Shown here piece after piece: positions 5,819-26,708 of a stretch of 37,919 nt of DNA (position 1 is the stretch's first letter; every line of letters begins with the position of its first letter). Below the pieces are notes generated by a model. That model was not told the DNA's origin. It made no database searches and saw only the letters and a program-made list of their open reading frames with translations. The translations under genes and the position numbers were made by a program. Location of the stretch: the sequence record MK064562.1; one strand, written 5' to 3'.

Positions 5819-6598
5819 TTAAAAATATATACTACTTTTTTGCATTTCAACAAGTGTCATAATGCTGTCCGTGTCTACCCTATTTTTTACATGTTCACGT
5901 ATTGTTTCCTTTAGCTCATCGTATTCGTTTTTCTTCATTTTTAATGCGTATTCTATTGCCTCATCAAAACTTTTGATGTCAATCGTGTCTAGTACGTACG
6001 TGTTCAGTAACGTGTTTTTGACTACTATGTCACCCGTTACGTAAAAGTGGATTCCCGGCGTGTCTTTGTGTGTTATCGGTATACACGCGTTTGCCATTGC
6101 CTCGTAAAGGTATAAGTCTTCGCTTTGTTTTGACAGGTTTGTATAAATACAAAAATGGTGTGACGCGAATTCTTCTAATCGGTTGTTTTTAGCTTCAATT
6201 ATATTGAAAAGTTTGAAGTACTTGGATTTCCTAAGATATGAAATTCCGTACATGTCAAAATAATAGTTATCAACGATTAACATGAATAATGATTTATGCT
6301 TTTTTTCCTCTATACGGAAAATAGGTGGTGGTAACGTTTCATACACGTTGAAAAACTTGTTGTAACGTTCTGAGGGTGTGATTATCTTTAAGTTGTATAG
6401 ATTAACGGTTTTAATGTCGTATGCGTCGGTAAAGCAATAAATAAAGCGTCTTCTTGTGTCTATTGATGAGAGAAAAACGTCTATTACTTTCCCGCATTCT
6501 GTAAAAACTAGTTTAGCTTTTTCAAGTGTACTATTTGTCCTTACGGGGAAGTATTTAAAAAAGGGGAATTTATCATCTACGTAGATAGTTGGAACGAT
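5819..6598 (-). CDS. Divergent GT-B (GT4-like) glycosyltransferase with non-canonical or mutated start
   Basis: Frame open 6604-5819; KIITPSE and LYEAMANACIPI motifs; no ATG/GTG/TTG before 6346; SD-like GGAGGATGA upstream of ATC at 6598. Confidence 0.6.
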   Translation of the reverse strand: MVPTIYVDDKFPFFKYFPVRTNSTLEKAKLVFTECGKVIDVFLSSIDTRRRFIYCFTDAYDIKTVNLYNLKIITPSERYNKFFNVYETLPPPIFRIEEKKHKSLFMLIVDNYYFDMYGISYLRKSKYFKLFNIIEAKNNRLEEFASHHFCIYTNLSKQSEDLYLYEAMANACIPITHKDTPGIHFYVTGDIVVKNTLLNTYVLDTIDIKSFDEAIEYALKMKKNEYDELKETIREHVKNRVDTDSIMTLVEMQKSSIYF

Positions 6599-8364
6599 AG
6601 TAAATCATCCTCCTTTTCAATTGTTAATGTATATTCTTTGTCCTCTTCTGTGGCTATTTCAACCCTTACTCCTTCTATTCGTACTGGTATGTGCGTTCCC
6701 GGTTTTGCTATTCTGAATATTGTCCTATCAAATATGTAGTTGTCAAGTCCTAGGATTCTGGTCACGTCTTCTAGCAATGTCGGGTTCTCGTGTGCTAGGT
6801 TTAACACGTTTTCGAGGAATGTTAGATATATGCCTTCTCTTTGTATTATTTGTAATAGTGTTACGTAAGGTCTTTCGAAACTATACGTACCGTGTTCATG
6901 AATTTCGAAGTACGCGTGTATGTATTCGTGAAATGTGGCGATCATGTATAATGTTTCTAGTGTGTCTTTCTCAGCCATTCCCAGTTCCGGGGCTTCTATT
7001 TTTGTCATTATCCTGGGTGGGGATAGGAATATATACTGTTTTTCAGCGAATTTTGTTATTCCTAATAAATCGCTCGTTTGGTACGCGTAACTGTCCTTTA
7101 ACACGAATAGGGGTATTTTTTGTAGTTTATAATCTAGTATTGCGTAATCGTTTGTTATCCCGAGGAAAGCTAATACTGTGTTAAATGCCCATAATCCTGC
7201 TAATACTCCTTTCTTTATGTCATCAGGCAGTTCTGCGAACTTGTATGAGTTGTTTAAAAGTATCATTATGTCTCTATTTTGAGAATATTCTTTTGCCGTG
7301 AATGCCTCATATCCTTTCTTTCTAATTCTATTTACAACAGTTTCAAATATGTAATCATATTGTATATTGAATCCGAACCCGTTACCTATCATTATTATTT
7401 CTTTTAACGATCCTACAATGATCGGCTTTACATCAAAGGCTTTAGCTATTGAGATTATTGCGTCTGCAAATACGTCATTCAGCTCTACCATGATGGGGCT
7501 ATAATCACCCGGGAAGTTAAACAAGAACGCGTTCCCCTCTTTTTTCCCGTTTTCTATAATCGCTTCCTTTATTAGTTCTTTGTCTTCATTTGATAATTTG
7601 CCGAGTTGTTCGTATAACGTTGAGTTATATGGATTTACTTTTGTGCGGTATTGGTCTGCGTATACACAACATAAGTTAACGCTAAACGGTAGATCCCACT
7701 TTCCGGAATACATCCCGTTGTGGTATACATTACGTCCTTCTTTCAACACTTGGGTTTTTCCCTTCCACAATAAATCAATGTCAAGTTTTTTCCCTTCCAC
7801 GTAAACGGTGGTTTGTCCTTTTGTTTCAGCTTTTCCCCGTAATACAACAAGTCTACACATGTCATCTACGTCTTTGATTTTTATTGTCCCGTTACAATAC
7901 CCCGCGAACATGTATGCGTGGTTATCAGTTAACACGAGTGCGGTTTTTCCGATTAGTAACATGGTACCCATTGCTTGTTTCAGCCCTACCCCGAACTTTC
8001 CTATTAAACAACACGGAGGTTTTGTTTGAGTTGTCTTTGTCGTGAAACCCAATTCAAAGGCTTCCTCACTTATTGCTCCTTCAGACCTTATTACATAATA
8101 ACCGTTTTCGTAATCCAGTTTTACGTTTCTATATGCGTTCAAGAAGTCAAGCGTTTTTTGTATTTCGTTATCAATCGCGTTCTGTAGGAATTCTCGGATA
8201 ACGAATAACAGTAATTGGTTTTCATCTTGTGATGTATACGTGTAAACTGACTCGGACACAGTCCTAAAATAATGTAATCTGATATCGCTTGATATGAACG
8301 CTTCGTCGAAAGTTAGTTTTATTGGTTGGTTTATGGTGATAGGAGGTATTTTTATGAACTCCAT
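6577..8364 (-). CDS. GHKL (Hsp90/MORC-like) ATPase fused to HExxH zincin-like metallopeptidase
   Basis: IREFLQNAIDN, FELGFTTK, IGKFGVGLK; C-terminal FHEYIHAYFEIHEHGTYSF. Confidence 0.85.
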   Translation of the reverse strand: MEFIKIPPITINQPIKLTFDEAFISSDIRLHYFRTVSESVYTYTSQDENQLLLFVIREFLQNAIDNEIQKTLDFLNAYRNVKLDYENGYYVIRSEGAISEEAFELGFTTKTTQTKPPCCLIGKFGVGLKQAMGTMLLIGKTALVLTDNHAYMFAGYCNGTIKIKDVDDMCRLVVLRGKAETKGQTTVYVEGKKLDIDLLWKGKTQVLKEGRNVYHNGMYSGKWDLPFSVNLCCVYADQYRTKVNPYNSTLYEQLGKLSNEDKELIKEAIIENGKKEGNAFLFNFPGDYSPIMVELNDVFADAIISIAKAFDVKPIIVGSLKEIIMIGNGFGFNIQYDYIFETVVNRIRKKGYEAFTAKEYSQNRDIMILLNNSYKFAELPDDIKKGVLAGLWAFNTVLAFLGITNDYAILDYKLQKIPLFVLKDSYAYQTSDLLGITKFAEKQYIFLSPPRIMTKIEAPELGMAEKDTLETLYMIATFHEYIHAYFEIHEHGTYSFERPYVTLLQIIQREGIYLTFLENVLNLAHENPTLLEDVTRILGLDNYIFDRTIFRIAKPGTHIPVRIEGVRVEIATEEDKEYTLTIEKEDDLLSFQLST

Positions 8365-16532: not shown

Positions 16533-17149
16533 TACGACACCGGTAACAATAATTTCTGAAGTGTTGTATATTGGAAGAACAACCTAGGGAACGGGTTAGG
16601 TAAGTTAACGTTTGATGTAAATTCGTACACTGTAAGCGGGTACGGATCTGGTGTACTTAGTACAACGTTACCTGTTTGCAGAATGTAAGCCATAGGTAGG
16701 ACGGGATCATATGCCACAAGATACGACTTAAGACTTGAGGGTGTAACGTTTATCAGCGAGTAGTCTGCTGGTGGGTTCTGTTGACTAAAACCACCTTCCG
16801 GTACATGGAGGACTGTCTTTGGAGGTACTTTAAACACGAACACGATATTCTTGAAGTTATTACTTGATAACACAGCCATCCTATAAGGGTTACTGTCCGA
16901 TGTACTTTGTGACTTATCAGTCCATAAGTCCACATACCCGTTACCAATGTAAACCTCAGCGAACGCACTACCGAATACGTAACCGTTTCTCAGAATTGAC
17001 ACATAGATTTCACTTGATGTGGGGTTATCAATTATCCATTCTATATCGTTCTGGTCTATCCACTGAAATGAAAGTGAGGGATTTCCCGTACCTTGAGATT
17101 GTTCTACCTTAACTTTGTCTAATCTACTGATTCTTGACCCTATTATCAT
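16532..17149 (-). CDS. Hypothetical beta-rich protein resembling a family seen in crenarchaeal viruses
   Basis: 205 aa; GYVFGSAFAEVY, FVFKVPP, VPEGGF, YILQTG. Confidence 0.8.
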   Translation of the reverse strand: MIIGSRISRLDKVKVEQSQGTGNPSLSFQWIDQNDIEWIIDNPTSSEIYVSILRNGYVFGSAFAEVYIGNGYVDLWTDKSQSTSDSNPYRMAVLSSNNFKNIVFVFKVPPKTVLHVPEGGFSQQNPPADYSLINVTPSSLKSYLVAYDPVLPMAYILQTGNVVLSTPDPYPLTVYEFTSNVNLPNPFPRLFFQYTTLQKLLLPVS

Positions 17150-17802: not shown

Positions 17803-18207
17803 ATGTATTTCAACGGAGACATAGTTGAAGGGATATTACGAGTAGGTACGGCTACGCGTGTAAACGGTGAGTTATTAACGAGACCCCTGTTACTTTTTGG
17901 AAAATTTGTGTTGTATGGTAGTTTTATAACTAGGGAGGTGGAAAGGGAGACACTGGAAGGCAAAACTACTACTGTAAACGAGATAATTCCCATTAACGGT
18001 ATAATATTTTCCAAATTTATACAATATATTTTTGTTTTAAGTTATATAACAGATCCCGATACGGGTTTAACATACGCGTACATGGTACTGTTGACACAGC
18101 GTACGTTAAACAAGCTCATTAATTACTATAAGTTCTGGGATATCGTAATACCGAATATAGATCAGGAATTATATGAATATACAATTGAAATAGGTGAGTT
18201 AAGATGA
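17803..18207 (+). CDS. Hypothetical protein
   Basis: 134 aa; 34-bp divergent AT-rich promoter gap. Confidence 0.8.
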   Translation: MYFNGDIVEGILRVGTATRVNGELLTRPLLLFGKFVLYGSFITREVERETLEGKTTTVNEIIPINGIIFSKFIQYIFVLSYITDPDTGLTYAYMVLLTQRTLNKLINYYKFWDIVIPNIDQELYEYTIEIGELR

Positions 18208-18407
18208 GTGCGAAAGATACTTCAGTATCTCTTGATATAGTGATAGTAATAGGGCTTGTAGCAATAGCAATAAGTATAATATTCACGTTCACTGTAAATC
18301 CTCAGTTAAGTAGTAATACAAATTTGATACAAATAGTATACGTTATCGTGACCGGTATAATAAGCATATTGAGTTATATAACGGGGAAAAATACAAGAAA
18401 ACAATAA
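18204..18407 (+). CDS. Two-TM small membrane protein
   Basis: IVIVIGLVAIAISIIFTFTV and LIQIVYVIVTGIISILSYIT; basic tail. Confidence 0.8.
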   Translation: MSAKDTSVSLDIVIVIGLVAIAISIIFTFTVNPQLSSNTNLIQIVYVIVTGIISILSYITGKNTRKQ

Positions 18408-18431
18408 AATATTCGGTACAAAAATGTAAAT

Positions 18432-18668
18432 ATGCTATATAAGGGTGCTTTGAAATTCGGTAACCTCGATATAGATTGTAACCCATGTGTGGTCAGGGGT
18501 GAATACTTTTATCAGAACGACCTCCTCGTAGTGTCAAAAGGTATAGTAATATTAAAAAGCGTTGATGATGTTATCGTGATAACCAACCAACGGGTGATAA
18601 GGATACCCATAGTAGCATTACAAACGATACTTACAAACAAAAACATGTTATCGGTGATAGGCATATGA
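18432..18668 (+). CDS. Hypothetical protein
   Basis: 78 aa. Confidence 0.7.
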   Translation: MLYKGALKFGNLDIDCNPCVVRGEYFYQNDLLVVSKGIVILKSVDDVIVITNQRVIRIPIVALQTILTNKNMLSVIGI

Positions 18669-18931
18669 AGTTATTAACTAATGTGGTAGTTAGAGACTAC
18701 GTTACCGGTAAAGAGTTGGAAAAGAAGATGGTATTTGCACAAGTGTTCGAGAAAACGCTAGATAGAGTATATGATGTTGGTATAATCATTGAGAACGTTC
18801 AAGGTGAAGCGTATATTATACAACCCCAACTTGCTATCAAGATAGATGAAGAACTATTGAAGAAGATAAATGAGACTCAGATAACGGACTCATCAATTTA
18901 TATAGCTGAATTCCCGGGGGTGTACAACTGA
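18665..18931 (+). CDS. Hypothetical protein
   Basis: 88 aa; ATGA overlap. Confidence 0.75.
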   Translation: MKLLTNVVVRDYVTGKELEKKMVFAQVFEKTLDRVYDVGIIIENVQGEAYIIQPQLAIKIDEELLKKINETQITDSSIYIAEFPGVYN

Positions 18932-19134
18932 TGCCATCGTATTGGTCTATTTTCCAGTTTATTGAAAACCTATTCTGGTTAATAAAAAATAGAAAACATT
19001 ATACGGAAACGATATCTATGATGATTGACGTTGTAAACCACGCTTTCATTTGTTACGACTATGATAAAATACTTGACAGTGTAAAGGGAGACAAGGAGGC
19101 GTATGAGAGATTAGAAAAGTCGAGGATATGCTAA
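18931..19134 (+). CDS. Hypothetical protein
   Basis: 67 aa; TGATG overlap. Confidence 0.65.
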   Translation: MPSYWSIFQFIENLFWLIKNRKHYTETISMMIDVVNHAFICYDYDKILDSVKGDKEAYERLEKSRIC

Positions 19135-19482
19135 ATGAACGGGTCATATACGCTATGTACGTATCAACTAAAAAGATACTTAAACGCTATGGTAAAGGAC
19201 ATTAAAGCGATAAAGAAGAAGGGCTATACGGTTGTAGGACTCGTATACGATTTCGTTGATTTCTATTCAATCATTGCAATTGCTAATAAGGAGAACGGCT
19301 TTACTTTACAACAGCTGAATGAACTGGAGACGCTATGGGGTATGTTCTGTGCGAGACTGGAAGGGTATAATTACACCGAACCCCTGTGTTATGAGAAATT
19401 TAATGTAGGCACCCAATTAAATACCTGTTGTTTCGGTGATGAGGAGTGCTTAAGTCTAGACTCTATTCTGCAATCTTTGTAA
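19135..19482 (+). CDS. Hypothetical protein
   Basis: 115 aa; abuts the previous stop. Confidence 0.75.
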   Translation: MNGSYTLCTYQLKRYLNAMVKDIKAIKKKGYTVVGLVYDFVDFYSIIAIANKENGFTLQQLNELETLWGMFCARLEGYNYTEPLCYEKFNVGTQLNTCCFGDEECLSLDSILQSL

Positions 19483-19748
19483 TTTTAATAATTACAGCAA
19501 TAATATTAATTGTAGACCCTGATATATATACTATTATTGCTTTTGTTTCATCCGTTATCGGTATAATATATACTACTTATAACCTAATGGTAAAGGAGAT
19601 AGAGAATACTGTGTATCGACTCTACGAACAAAGACTTAGGAGTGACATCCACAACGACATAGAACAAATCATATACCAAGTTTACGAGCAAAAACTAAAA
19701 AATGATATAAAGGACATGATTGAAAATTATTTACGTAATCCTAAGTAA
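19446..19748 (+). CDS. Membrane protein, N-terminal TMs plus 20-aa helical repeats
   Basis: IENTVYRLYEQRLRSDIHND / IEQIIYQVYEQKLKNDIKDM. Confidence 0.8.
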   Translation: MLKSRLYSAIFVILIITAIILIVDPDIYTIIAFVSSVIGIIYTTYNLMVKEIENTVYRLYEQRLRSDIHNDIEQIIYQVYEQKLKNDIKDMIENYLRNPK

Positions 19749-20023
19749 TTCAGATATAGCCCGTAACCCAAGTAAATAGGTAAAACTACCAGCATCATGA
19801 TTAGGTCAAACGTGTACACTGCGTAAAAAGTGACCAGCCCTATTACATTACTTATAATAAGTGTTGAGAGTTTAAGGTTTCGCATTATCGCGAAAACGTT
19901 TTCATACGTTAGCCATACTAAAAATATACTTAATAATATATAATTATGATAACAGTGAAGTATCAGTGCAAACAAAATGTATAAAGCATATGCGAAACGT
20001 ATTTCGTGATCAGTTTTTTGCAT
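19727..20023 (-). CDS. Small multi-pass membrane protein
   Basis: 98 aa, 3-4 hydrophobic segments. Confidence 0.7.
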   Translation of the reverse strand: MQKTDHEIRFAYALYILFALILHCYHNYILLSIFLVWLTYENVFAIMRNLKLSTLIISNVIGLVTFYAVYTFDLIMMLVVLPIYLGYGLYLNYLGLRK

Positions 20024-23063: not shown

Positions 23064-23099
23064 ATAGTTATTTAAGTATCGCTAAAATAAAAATCTTAT
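23064..23099. promoter_or_regulatory. Bidirectional promoter of the virion cluster
   Basis: 36-bp gap with TTATTTAA (+) and TTTTTATT (-) about 25 nt from each ATG. Confidence 0.55.
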
Positions 23100-23792
23100 A
23101 TGAGTAGTACAAATGCGGTTTACAGTGCATTAGTCAAAAACTCCCTTAGTGTAAGTTGGCAAATAATAACATCAACCGGTTCTACAATATCACCCCAAGC
23201 AATAATATTCCAAATAAACTCAAGAACTGAATTTATAATAGTACTCACGGATGATACATTTAACTCTTATACGGCTACTCAAGTCGTGTTATTAATTAAC
23301 GGTTATAAGATGTTAACCATCCCCATAAATATAGTGAAACAATCCTATCAAACACTCGCAATAGCATTACAAGTTACAGTTGAAGCACAGCCTTGGGAAG
23401 CCAACCTAACACAAGATATACTATACGCATTAGTAGGTTATTTGTATAATTGGACGGTAACACAGTGGTATCTCGTAATAAATAGACCTGTCCTAGCACA
23501 CACAACAAGGACTACCACAGCAGTACATACCACATATTATTGTGCTACATCACAAGTTTCATCCATTGGAAGCGGTAGTGCTAATTACTCTGTAGCCACA
23601 ACAACACCATCAACCGTTTTATCACTCTCAATAAACTATTCCCAATGTCAAGCGATCAAACCAACAACACTTATAATCAGTGATTCATTAGGTAACAAAA
23701 ACACTACATTAATATCAGGCATTGAATCAACAACGTGTCCTTACGGTAAATCATGCACTGCAACACTTATTATCCATTTCAACGCATTTTAA
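23100..23792 (+). CDS. Putative virion protein, paralog family member 3
   Basis: 230 aa; SYTATQVVL; Thr-rich. Confidence 0.75.
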   Translation: MSSTNAVYSALVKNSLSVSWQIITSTGSTISPQAIIFQINSRTEFIIVLTDDTFNSYTATQVVLLINGYKMLTIPINIVKQSYQTLAIALQVTVEAQPWEANLTQDILYALVGYLYNWTVTQWYLVINRPVLAHTTRTTTAVHTTYYCATSQVSSIGSGSANYSVATTTPSTVLSLSINYSQCQAIKPTTLIISDSLGNKNTTLISGIESTTCPYGKSCTATLIIHFNAF

Positions 23793-23795
23793 AAT

Positions 23796-24152
23796 ATGGC
23801 ACAAGCAGTACTTGGTATATTGGGATCTATAGGTGGTGGGATAGGAGGAGGACTAAGCGGTATTGCGGATGCCATAGGTAGGGTTGTAAGCGGGATAGTT
23901 AGAACTGTGGGAAGGGGGTTTGACACCATTGCTAGAGCTTTCGGTAAATTCGTTGACTGGTTTTCACGAATCGCGTCACGACTCGCAAGGCTTATATTAC
24001 ATTATTTCCGTATCCTAGCACGGTACTTTTTAGTATTACTTAAATACTCAGCTAGAGTAATGATAAACTTTTACAATAATTTTCAACGTGACCCTCTAAC
24101 TTCATTACAATTTATTGGTAGTATGGCAATACTCATAAATAGTGGTCTATAA
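23796..24152 (+). CDS. Amphipathic-helix protein (candidate envelope-associated)
   Basis: 118 aa; Gly-rich N-terminus, about 11-residue periodicity, Arg-rich. Confidence 0.75.
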   Translation: MAQAVLGILGSIGGGIGGGLSGIADAIGRVVSGIVRTVGRGFDTIARAFGKFVDWFSRIASRLARLILHYFRILARYFLVLLKYSARVMINFYNNFQRDPLTSLQFIGSMAILINSGL

Positions 24153-24562
24153 TGAGCATCCCGATTCCTGATGAAATAAAACCGTTTACAAAAAACATAC
24201 AATTTGATGTTAATTCGCAGTCGTTTATAGTAACGATATCTGCAAAACTATTCTTTTCAACACTATTAGCAAACCAGACAGTAAACCAAAACACGACAAA
24301 TTTCAACATTTTAAATGTCACGAAAGCCAACGAAAAGATTTACGTTTATGTAAAGCCTAACGTTAACCTAACCGACCCTTTCGAGGGGTTTGAAGGGAGA
24401 TTCGTTATTAACCAAGCAAAATTAGATAAGATGATACTTGAGAACGCACAAAACGTAAGAATTTATTATAAACAAGAAAACGATGACCTCTTAATCCTAC
24501 TTGTAGTACCGATGGGTGATATAAGTGCCAAAAGTCCAAGTACTTCTCCAGTTGGCTGGTAA
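24152..24562 (+). CDS. Hypothetical protein in the virion cluster
   Basis: 136 aa; TAATG overlap. Confidence 0.75.
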   Translation: MSIPIPDEIKPFTKNIQFDVNSQSFIVTISAKLFFSTLLANQTVNQNTTNFNILNVTKANEKIYVYVKPNVNLTDPFEGFEGRFVINQAKLDKMILENAQNVRIYYKQENDDLLILLVVPMGDISAKSPSTSPVGW

Positions 24563-25226
24563 AGTAGAAATTGACGCTACGTACAAGAACACAATAAACA
24601 ACTCGTTCATAAATTACCTAAATCAAGCACTCCAAGGTCAACAGCCACTAATTAAATCGTACCAAATATACGAATCTATAAACAACGTTACCGTGCCTGC
24701 AACGATAACTAAAACGACTACAGAGTTAAACCAAATAACGATCACACTACAAGCCCTACTTCAGAACCTCCAGTCCAACAACGTAGACTTGCATTTACAA
24801 GCTGTCCTAACTAACAACAGTCTGGTAGAAATAGCGTCCGTCTCAACGACAGTTCAAGTACTGTTAGGAAAAGCCGTGATAACGTGGACTATAATAATAA
24901 ACATTAACACATTCCAATCCGGTATACTCGTAAACTTCTTTCCCCTATACCAGTTCTTACTGAACTTCTTCACTAACAGTACACTATTAAAACAACAAGC
25001 TCCGCAGATTAACGTTACTCCCACACCGTACGCACAAAATATACAAGGTCTGTCATTTACTATTATTTATAACAACTACCAACAGGGTGGGAATTGCCCG
25101 ATTGTGGTAATGACCCTTTATTACATATTACTGGGTAATACGGTATTGAGTGTTGAGTACGGCTTTATATGTACACCGTCACCATCGCTATTAAACTTCT
25201 TCGAGTTCTCATTAAATATTTCATAA
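24525..25226 (+). CDS. Putative virion protein, paralog family member 4
   Basis: 233 aa; YKNTINNSF, VEIAS, ITWTIII. Confidence 0.75.
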   Translation: MPKVQVLLQLAGKVEIDATYKNTINNSFINYLNQALQGQQPLIKSYQIYESINNVTVPATITKTTTELNQITITLQALLQNLQSNNVDLHLQAVLTNNSLVEIASVSTTVQVLLGKAVITWTIIININTFQSGILVNFFPLYQFLLNFFTNSTLLKQQAPQINVTPTPYAQNIQGLSFTIIYNNYQQGGNCPIVVMTLYYILLGNTVLSVEYGFICTPSPSLLNFFEFSLNIS

Positions 25227-25718: not shown

Positions 25719-26708
25719 GTGCAAATCAAGTTGAGGGGCAGAGTACAAATAGTAATAGGAAAGACAAGGATAGCGAAAACAAATGACGTCAGTTCGGATT
25801 TCGCTATCGCACTAGGAAAAACGGTACTTTCAGGCACATTAGGAGGTTACGGTTACGGATCCGGGTTCGCATTACCAACACAAGTAGTAATCGTATTACT
25901 TAACAATAACGCAGTAGTTACAACAATATCAACAAACATAACTAAATTCAACGACCAAATAACAACCAACGGTGAACTAACAAGTGTAACGTTCGTAGGA
26001 AGTGACGCAACACCGGTACAATATACATTTAACCAGCTTGAATTATACACTGTAGTCCAGAACACACTTTACCTGAAAATAGCCACAGTAACATTACAGA
26101 ACCCACTAACAAAAAACATCAACGATATAGTAAACGTAACGTGGACTGAGGAAATAATATCATCATCTTCACTGATAAATTTCACAAACACACAACAAGC
26201 GTGTTCACAATGCTCAACCACATGTAACACGTCAACGTTATCACAAGCGTCAAACACGGCAAGTGTGGTTAACCTCGTGTGGGCATTACTCATAATACCG
26301 AACGCTAATACAATAGTCTCACAAATATCAACCCCGTTGTCAAGCTACATAACACAAGTATACACGTATTACTTAGCAAATAATAAACTACCTAACATTC
26401 TAGGAATAACGAACATTATCCTAACAGACCAATGCCTTAACGTGATAGAAAACGCGTCAATTGTATCACCTATCATAACGTATGGTTTAACCGGAACCGA
26501 AGCCATAGTATCACTCGCAGTGTTCATTACACCCGCACAAAGCGTGTATTACGCGTTACCAGTCTTCACAATACAAGGCGTACTATCTGCGTTTTTAGGA
26601 ATAGTACAAGTACAAAACCCGAGTCAAGTAACAGCAGGTCAAATAAGCATAATATTACAAATACCGTACGGCTCATCAACATTACAAGCATTAAACATAA
26701 ATGAGTGA
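25719..26708 (+). CDS. Putative virion protein, paralog family member 5
   Basis: 329 aa; GTG after GAGGTGA; YTFNQLELY, LTKNINDIVNVTW. Confidence 0.8.
   Translation: MQIKLRGRVQIVIGKTRIAKTNDVSSDFAIALGKTVLSGTLGGYGYGSGFALPTQVVIVLLNNNAVVTTISTNITKFNDQITTNGELTSVTFVGSDATPVQYTFNQLELYTVVQNTLYLKIATVTLQNPLTKNINDIVNVTWTEEIISSSSLINFTNTQQACSQCSTTCNTSTLSQASNTASVVNLVWALLIIPNANTIVSQISTPLSSYITQVYTYYLANNKLPNILGITNIILTDQCLNVIENASIVSPIITYGLTGTEAIVSLAVFITPAQSVYYALPVFTIQGVLSAFLGIVQVQNPSQVTAGQISIILQIPYGSSTLQALNINE

Follow-up and report, generated by a model that had tools for sequence, protein, structure and literature searches.

A candidate egress or membrane-remodeling protein, gp38, in the filamentous archaeal virus SBFV1

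Pyramid portals are a mechanism of cell exit that, to our knowledge, is found only in archaeal viruses. The portals are built of a single 10-kDa protein, which can assemble in archaeal, bacterial and yeast membranes. Three unrelated families of pyramid-forming proteins are known. The known virus-associated pyramid proteins (PVAPs) have an N-terminal transmembrane (TM) segment and a helical C-terminus in common, and share no sequence similarity (reviews). Large six-sided pyramids have been described for the viruses SEV1 and SIFV (egress review). In 2025, ORF84 was identified as the SEV1 protein; this small open reading frame (ORF) had been chosen by its N-terminal TM segment and helices, and its overexpression led to pyramids (PMC12273771). 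In this study, we examined gp38, a small membrane protein of Sulfolobales Beppu filamentous virus 1 (SBFV1), which is a filamentous archaeal virus of hot springs (Lipothrixviridae, Alphalipothrixvirus beppuense). The window, i.e., the whole stretch of DNA that was analyzed, is the complete SBFV1 record MK064562.1 (37,919 bases).

A first-pass annotation, made from the letters of this DNA alone, had pointed to three small membrane proteins in one region, here called gp33, gp38 and gp39, as candidate lysis or egress proteins. These ORFs are real: MK064562 carries all three as hypothetical genes at the coordinates then given (Table 1), and hydrophobicity scans agree. Over the region, SBFV1 is 98.8% identical to the isolate SFV1 (MH447526), in which gp33, gp38 and gp39 correspond to ORF32, ORF37 and ORF38. 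Judged by its architecture, its conservation and the lack of PVAP homologs, gp38 is the single sensible pyramid or egress candidate in viruses of the SBFV1 type. We place a probability of about 0.35 on gp38 being an egress or membrane-remodeling protein that is a functional analog of pyramid proteins.

The GTG codon of gp38 is its only possible start, and a longer reading is excluded, because an in-frame TGA (19440-19442) lies two codons upstream. A Kyte-Doolittle scan of the 100-residue product revealed two N-terminal hydrophobic segments (approximate limits in Table 1) linked by D24-P25-D26. The first-pass annotation had proposed a single N-terminal TM segment; the membrane anchor stands, but both the scan and the family alignment replace the single segment with two. 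What follows the second segment is hydrophilic, with 37% charged residues, and Lys and Arg abound in the C-terminal half. In the AlphaFold2 model, two helices, residues 2-23 and 25-97, are separated by a break at residue 24 (predicted local distance difference test, pLDDT, 84). Basic residues ahead of the first segment, an acidic turn and basic residues after the second segment form a pattern that, by the positive-inside rule, predicts an N-in, C-in topology with the hydrophilic domain on the cytoplasmic face.

This domain contains the 20-residue amphipathic repeat that had been noticed earlier, and the repeat is well beyond chance. The best ungapped self-alignment of gp38 is at offset 20, with a BLOSUM62 score of 65 that none of 5000 shuffled sequences reached, and the core of the repeat reads VYEQ-basic-L-basic-x-DI. 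In the ortholog from SBFV2, the second species of the genus, the same repeat occurs at offset 16 (again 0 of 5000 shuffles). A 4-residue indel is located exactly at the junction of the repeats in two lineages, the deletion being in the SBFV2 lineage. This position suggests a hinge that could let the two amphipathic helices pack together or against neighboring molecules. Prediction of a homo-oligomer with four copies gave a median score of 0.38 against a mark of 0.42, with controls at 0.00, a result that bears neither way on self-association.

We then asked how unusual this layout is within the genome. A filter was applied to ORFs of 50-160 residues, which passed if a hydrophobic window started within the first 15 residues and the C-terminus had at least 40 residues with a negative grand average of hydropathy. 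Only 1 of 99 SBFV1 ORFs passed, and it was gp38, in line with its earlier ranking as the best architectural candidate. It is also the only annotated small SBFV1 protein with an N-terminal anchor followed by a hydrophilic C-terminus. The same filter recovers P98 of SIRV2, C92 of STIV and gp43-110 of SBFV3, each with one extra ORF. Three SBFV2 ORFs passed, the gp38 ortholog among them.

The known PVAP families were searched for directly. One hidden Markov model (HMM) was built from five proteins of the gp43 family (SIFV, AFV9, AFV6, AFV7 and SSFV3) and another from P98 and C92, and both were run on six-frame translations of SBFV1 and SBFV2. In SBFV1, the best E values were 0.065 for the gp43 model, to an unrelated ORF of 60 residues, and 0.5 for the P98/C92 model; in SBFV2, they were 0.93 and 0.081, respectively. 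Run on gp38 itself, the gp43 model gave no hit and the P98/C92 model an E value of 6.6. These searches show no detectable homolog of P98/C92 or SIFV gp43 in the SBFV1 genome. The gp43 model does match gp43-110 of the deltalipothrixvirus SBFV3 (E 1.5e-6), with the LCT...LK...C motif conserved, in agreement with the egress review, which places gp43 homologs in beta- and deltalipothrixviruses. Because the same profile reaches this protein, finding nothing with it in the alpha genus is meaningful. The C-terminal LCT...ELK-x-SKLC motif of the gp43 family is absent from the gp38 family alignment. By these comparisons, gp38 is not a member of either of the two testable PVAP families, SIFV gp43 and P98/C92. 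Separately, gp43-110, which is annotated as hypothetical (25874-26206 of the SBFV3 stretch examined), can be described as a homolog of the SIFV gp43-type pyramid protein.

Homologs of gp38 are few and confined to related viruses. Word-index protein searches with gp38, gp39 and gp33 returned self or near-self matches only, and pattern scans for gp38 in IMG/VR and metagenomes found SBFV2 only, or nothing. The SBFV2 homolog was detected by tblastn, and an exhaustive profile search of 1.84 billion representative proteins added four further members (96, 99, 106 and 59 residues) and nothing else credible. The contigs that encode these four are alphalipothrixvirus-like, of the SFV1 type, and two of them carry SFV1_VP4 or VP5 capsid genes. 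The gp38 gene is thus kept in five diverged alphalipothrixvirus lineages, which share the gene order gp32-like, VP7, VP8, gp36-like, gp37-like and gp38-like. The gp38-like gene is always last and overlaps the gene upstream. Full-length members are 32-41% identical to gp38, and none lacks either hydrophobic segment, the acidic turn or either repeat; D24 is invariant across the family alignment. The ratio of nonsynonymous to synonymous substitution rates (dN/dS) between the SBFV2 ortholog and its metagenomic relative is 0.245, and the gene is under purifying selection. We therefore regard gp38 as the founding member of a family found only in alphalipothrixviruses, and its gene as a conserved core gene of these viruses. 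The SBFV2 ortholog, gp45 (MK064563.1, 22209-22508), is annotated with 82 residues from a TTG start. An in-frame ATG lies 17 codons upstream and gives 99 residues; the annotated start is probably wrong, as the upstream ATG restores the conserved first hydrophobic segment and matches the other family members.

Data on SFV1 provide the biological setting. This virus was isolated from plaques, and mass spectrometry of its virions identified eight proteins, VP1-VP8 (PMC6105669). ORF37, the gp38 ortholog, is not among them, while the two-TM protein VP3 was detected (PMC6105669). Such absence fits what is expected of a pyramid protein, and gp38 is probably kept out of the virion. Archaeol makes up 80% of the SFV1 envelope lipids and 1% of those of the host (PMC6105669). 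In SIFV, such selective lipid uptake is linked to envelopment inside the cell and exit through pyramids. The envelope of SSFV3 (SIFV3 in PMC10101205) is also rich in archaeol, and we find that SSFV3 carries a gp43 homolog.

Among described systems, the gp43 family is closest to gp38 in taxonomy, as both belong to Lipothrixviridae, with gp43 found in the beta- and deltalipothrixviruses. Like gp38, members of this family have ~90-110 residues, lack a signal peptide and combine an N-terminal membrane anchor with a C-terminus that is helical and charged, and the genes of both lie in the part of the genome that holds structural and glycosyltransferase genes. However, gp43 proteins have one hydrophobic segment and two cysteines in their C-terminal motif, whereas gp38 has a hairpin anchor, a tandem repeat and no such motif. 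Gene contexts also differ: in five betalipothrixviruses and the unclassified SSFV3, the six viruses examined, the gp43-type gene directly adjoins a glycosyltransferase gene, which shares its strand in all but one, whereas gp38 is convergent with gp41, 600 bp away. P98 and C92 (92-98 residues) resemble gp38 in size, in the all-helical prediction and, as far as the SFV1 protein list goes for gp38, in their absence from virions, and have an N-terminal hydrophobic anchor of ~30 residues. They differ in that this anchor is a single segment and not a hairpin, and in that the soluble domain (62-65 residues) has no internal repeat and a lower charge (24-28%). SEV1 ORF84, like gp38, has no homology to known PVAPs and was picked by the same reasoning from architecture (PMC12273771); the difference, by description only, is that it has one TM helix followed by three helices (PMC12273771). 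Class II holins of the S21 type share two TM segments, a predicted N-in, C-in topology and a charged C-terminus with gp38 and, more closely, with gp33. They differ in setting, as the hosts here have no murein wall and the virus has no endolysin gene, and the C-terminal domain of gp38 is far longer than a holin tail. No holin family in Pfam or PHROGs matched gp33, gp38 or gp39 at a meaningful E value.

The gp38 gene closes an apparent operon, gp32-gp38, whose genes abut or overlap (by 37 nucleotides between gp37 and gp38) and in which GGTGA motifs precede gp33, gp35 and gp38 (Table 1). Membership in an operon with the VP7 and VP8 genes suggests that gp38 is co-expressed with them. For none of the ORFs in the region did Pfam or PHROGs yield a meaningful family; gp33 matches phrog_9152, an entry of unknown function (E 2.6e-6), and gp40 has weak zinc-finger matches (zf-C2HC_2, E 0.0024; a C2H2-type model, E 0.0087). 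The gp40 ortholog is kept directly after the gp38 ortholog in the SBFV2 lineage. At the other end of the operon, gp31 (the VP6 ortholog, minus strand) and gp32 (plus strand) are divergent and their 5' ends overlap by 20 nucleotides (17803-17822), so each promoter must lie within the other gene.

Table 1. Features of the gp38 locus in MK064562.1
Feature	Position	Strand	Description
A/T-rich TATA-like stretch	~20-30 nucleotides upstream of gp32		
gp32, 134 residues	17803..18207	+	First gene of operon gp32-gp38; homologs at the same place in metagenomic relatives
gp33, 67 residues	18204..18407	+	Two-TM hairpin with basic C-terminal tail; GGTGA Shine-Dalgarno-like motif upstream
gp34 and gp35	18432..18931	+	Orthologs of SFV1 minor virion proteins VP7 and VP8 (MH447526 annotation; virion mass spectrometry, PMC6105669); gp38 operon
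gp36 (67 residues) and gp37 (115 residues)	18931..19482	+	Conserved genes directly upstream of gp38; homologs on 4 of 4 metagenomic contigs
GGTGA Shine-Dalgarno-like motif	19435..19439	+	6 nucleotides ahead of the gp38 GTG start
gp38, 100 residues, GTG start	19446..19748	+	Candidate egress or membrane-remodeling protein
gp38 residues 7-47	19464..19586	+	Segment 1 (~7-23), D-P-D turn (24-26), segment 2 (~27-47); Kyte-Doolittle scan, alignment
gp38 residues 56-95	19611..19730	+	Tandem amphipathic helical repeat, 2 x 20 residues; self-alignment, family alignment
gp39, 98 residues	19727..20023	-	Predicted four-helix integral membrane protein; convergent with gp38, 22-nucleotide overlap
gp40, 102 residues	20010..20318	-	Ortholog of SBFV2 gp46; neighboring context, outside the membrane set

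The two other membrane proteins have a different history. In gp33, the scan found two strong hydrophobic segments (residues 12-30 and 41-59) and a basic tail, which bears out the two TM segments proposed for it; the label holin-like describes its architecture only, as no holin family matches. Its relatives, SBFV2 gp14 and gp39-66 of the deltalipothrixvirus SBFV3, are ~70% identical to it, and such identity across genera in the same hot spring suggests recent exchange. The multi-pass nature of gp39 was borne out: the protein is hydrophobic throughout, and AlphaFold2 places helices at residues 3-25, 28-47, 52-71 and 74-97 (pLDDT 79, predicted TM-score 0.69). Its family conserves the motifs DHE-x-R, W-x-x-Y-E-N-x-F-A and LN-x-LGL and includes SBFV2 gp15-107 (35% identity), SBFV3 gp38-115b (30%) and a protein on a 598-bp metagenomic contig (60%). 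Searches of the gp39 model against the PDB and ESM Atlas returned generic helical bundles only, and no fold or family match in Pfam, PHROGs or, for gp39, the structure searches explained the function of either protein. Given the identities among homologs (~70% for gp33, 32-41% together with the dN/dS value for gp38, and 30-60% for gp39), all three are more than chance ORFs.

SBFV1, SBFV2 and SBFV3 each carry members of both the gp33 and the gp39 family. In SBFV2, the two genes are adjacent and convergent, beside a gene for a 218-residue protein (6222-7430 of the SBFV2 stretch examined); the SBFV3 homolog of that protein, gp40-219 (55% identity), again lies beside both genes (23071-24994 of the SBFV3 stretch examined). 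It has no detectable homolog among the SBFV1 proteins compared, and SBFV1 gp08-219a, considered as its counterpart, was rejected for lack of similarity. Between the gp39- and gp33-family genes of SBFV3 are ~680 bp with no annotated gene (23419-24099 of the same stretch). Homologs of gp39 stand tail-to-tail with gp38 homologs in three of five lineages (SBFV1 and two metagenomic ones), and in the SBFV2 lineage the zinc-finger gene, the gp40 ortholog, follows the gp38 ortholog instead. We also considered gp39 as the positional counterpart of SIFV gp43 (same strand, upstream of a glycosyltransferase gene) and rejected it, since SBFV2 has the gp40 ortholog there and no gp39 homolog. Among the lineages compared, gp33 lies between gp32 and VP7 in SBFV1/SFV1 only, so the three membrane genes are not a conserved cassette. 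Since SBFV3 has both gp33 and gp39 families together with a gp43-type PVAP gene, the first-pass suggestion that either could be a pyramid protein is a poor one; they are better viewed as separate, co-travelling small membrane proteins that are unlikely to have this role.

The following course of events is proposed for gp38. It would be made together with VP7 and VP8, and a helical hairpin at its N-terminus, with an Asp-Pro-Asp turn between the hydrophobic helices, would anchor it in the host membrane. A highly charged C-terminal domain of ~50 residues, with two tandem amphipathic helices, would probably lie on the cytoplasmic face, and gp38 would self-associate through the amphipathic repeats. 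It would then remodel or breach the cell membrane, and virions enveloped inside the cell would leave. In function, gp38 may be analogous to SIRV2 P98, STIV C92, SIFV gp43 and SEV1 ORF84, with a hairpin anchor replacing the single helix. We infer the timing of expression, the self-assembly and the egress role. This reading is favored because gp38 is the sole ORF to pass the filter, no PVAP homolog is found, the gene is conserved in sequence and order, its operon includes virion protein genes, the SFV1 ortholog is absent from the virion protein list, SFV1 forms plaques and has an archaeol envelope, and SEV1 ORF84 provides a precedent. The latter is also a successful precedent for the architecture-based approach of the first-pass annotation, whose interpretation is partly supported; pyramids in these viruses are unproven.

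Several observations weigh against an egress role. Neither pyramids nor any mode of egress is described for SFV1 or SBFV1 in the searchable literature, and the words lysis, lytic, egress and pyramid are all absent from the SFV1 paper. The large many-sided pyramids, with an unassigned protein, that had been ascribed to SFV1-type viruses fit the descriptions of SEV1 and SIFV, with which they were probably confused, and for SEV1 the protein is now known to be ORF84 (PMC12273771). The proportions of gp38 are also atypical. Its hydrophobic span is ~47 residues in two segments (within residues 1-49) and its soluble part ~51 residues, compared with 18-34 and 61-83 residues, respectively, in eight pyramid proteins or homologs, two of which have been shown experimentally to form pyramids; in the gp43 family, the span ends at residues 25-31 and the soluble part has 61-83 residues. 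Profile comparison by hhalign gave a probability of 7.7% between the gp38 and gp43 families, over 22 TM residues only, and of 0.2% with P98/C92. Structure searches were uninformative: the gp38 model had no Foldseek match in BFVD, the gp38 profile had none among PDB sequences, and feature and shape searches of ESM Atlas gave scores in the chance range only. Finally, the filter narrowly misses SIFV gp43 and lets through SIRV2 ORF84c, even though P98, not this protein, builds the SIRV2 pyramids, so the layout is neither necessary nor sufficient for a pyramid protein. SIRV2 ORF84c (16719-16973 of the SIRV2 stretch examined) has an N-terminal TM segment and a long, charged, helical C-terminus and is possibly another membrane-associated factor.

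The predicted design of gp38 would be workable for lateral self-assembly under a membrane, and it fits an envelopment factor or a holin-like lesion former equally well. The former would be a non-virion assembly protein, e.g., a scaffold that would collect membrane rich in archaeol around nucleocapsids within the cell, with no role in opening it. We consider this somewhat unlikely. The operon with VP7 and VP8, near capsid genes, would suit such a factor, as would the very selective lipid acquisition of SFV1. Pairing amphipathic helices with a membrane hairpin is a common way to shape membranes, and the gp38 family is found only in alphalipothrixviruses, which have an unusual archaeol envelope. 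However, such a factor has neither homology nor precedent in any archaeal virus, and the archaeol-rich SSFV3 (PMC10101205) has a gp43 homolog, while our searches gave no gp38 homolog outside SFV1-type viruses. A holin-like protein, on the other hand, would accumulate as an N-in, C-in hairpin and permeabilize the membrane at a set time, with no geometric pyramids. The textbook layout of class II holins has two TM segments joined by a tight turn and a C-terminus of high charge, as in gp38; SFV1 forms plaques, and one gp38 family member matches Holin_BlyA at noise level (E 0.012), far under any cut-off. We nevertheless find it improbable: no holin family in Pfam or PHROGs matches significantly, an endolysin-type partner is neither needed nor seen, and the viral lysis that has been described for Sulfolobales cells proceeds through pyramids (egress review, PMC12273771).

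Two further explanations place the function elsewhere. With virion proteins as operon partners, gp38 could be a low-abundance envelope protein overlooked by mass spectrometry, in which small hydrophobic proteins are often under-detected. Against this stand its Lys/Arg-rich C-terminal half, which should yield good tryptic peptides, and the detection of the two-TM VP3 in the same experiment (PMC6105669), and we give it the same low standing as a holin. Alternatively, the three membrane ORFs could be a lysis cassette with gp33 or gp39, and not gp38, as the effector. The co-occurrence of the gp33 and gp39 families in three viruses, the tail-to-tail arrangement of gp39 with gp38 homologs, and, in SBFV3, the proximity of both families to the gp43-type PVAP gene (~1.6-2.5 kb) are in its favor. 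Yet this proximity is expected by chance in about 1 of 5 cases by our own estimate, a gp43-type PVAP is already encoded in SBFV3, no other lineage has gp33 at this place, and both proteins lack a soluble self-assembly domain. This makes the cassette very improbable.

An egress role for gp38 can be carried one step further. The gp38 family could be a fourth pyramid or egress family, unrelated in sequence to the others (set apart from SEV1 ORF84 by description), and the first with a hairpin anchor and an assembly domain of tandem amphipathic repeats, which would explain the exit of SFV1-type viruses; gp39 could then be an accessory of the portal, because it stands tail-to-tail with gp38 in three lineages and occurs near the gp43-type gene in a deltalipothrixvirus. 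We regard this extension as possible, if doubtful. Overall, these data narrow the search for the exit protein of alphalipothrixviruses to one conserved candidate gene, with a predicted hairpin anchor and an amphipathic helix in duplicate. Should gp38 form portals, this would reveal how small the sequence demands of portal self-assembly are and would widen the rule by which such genes are found. If gp38 forms no portals, the same gene would be a lead to the mechanism of envelopment inside the cell.

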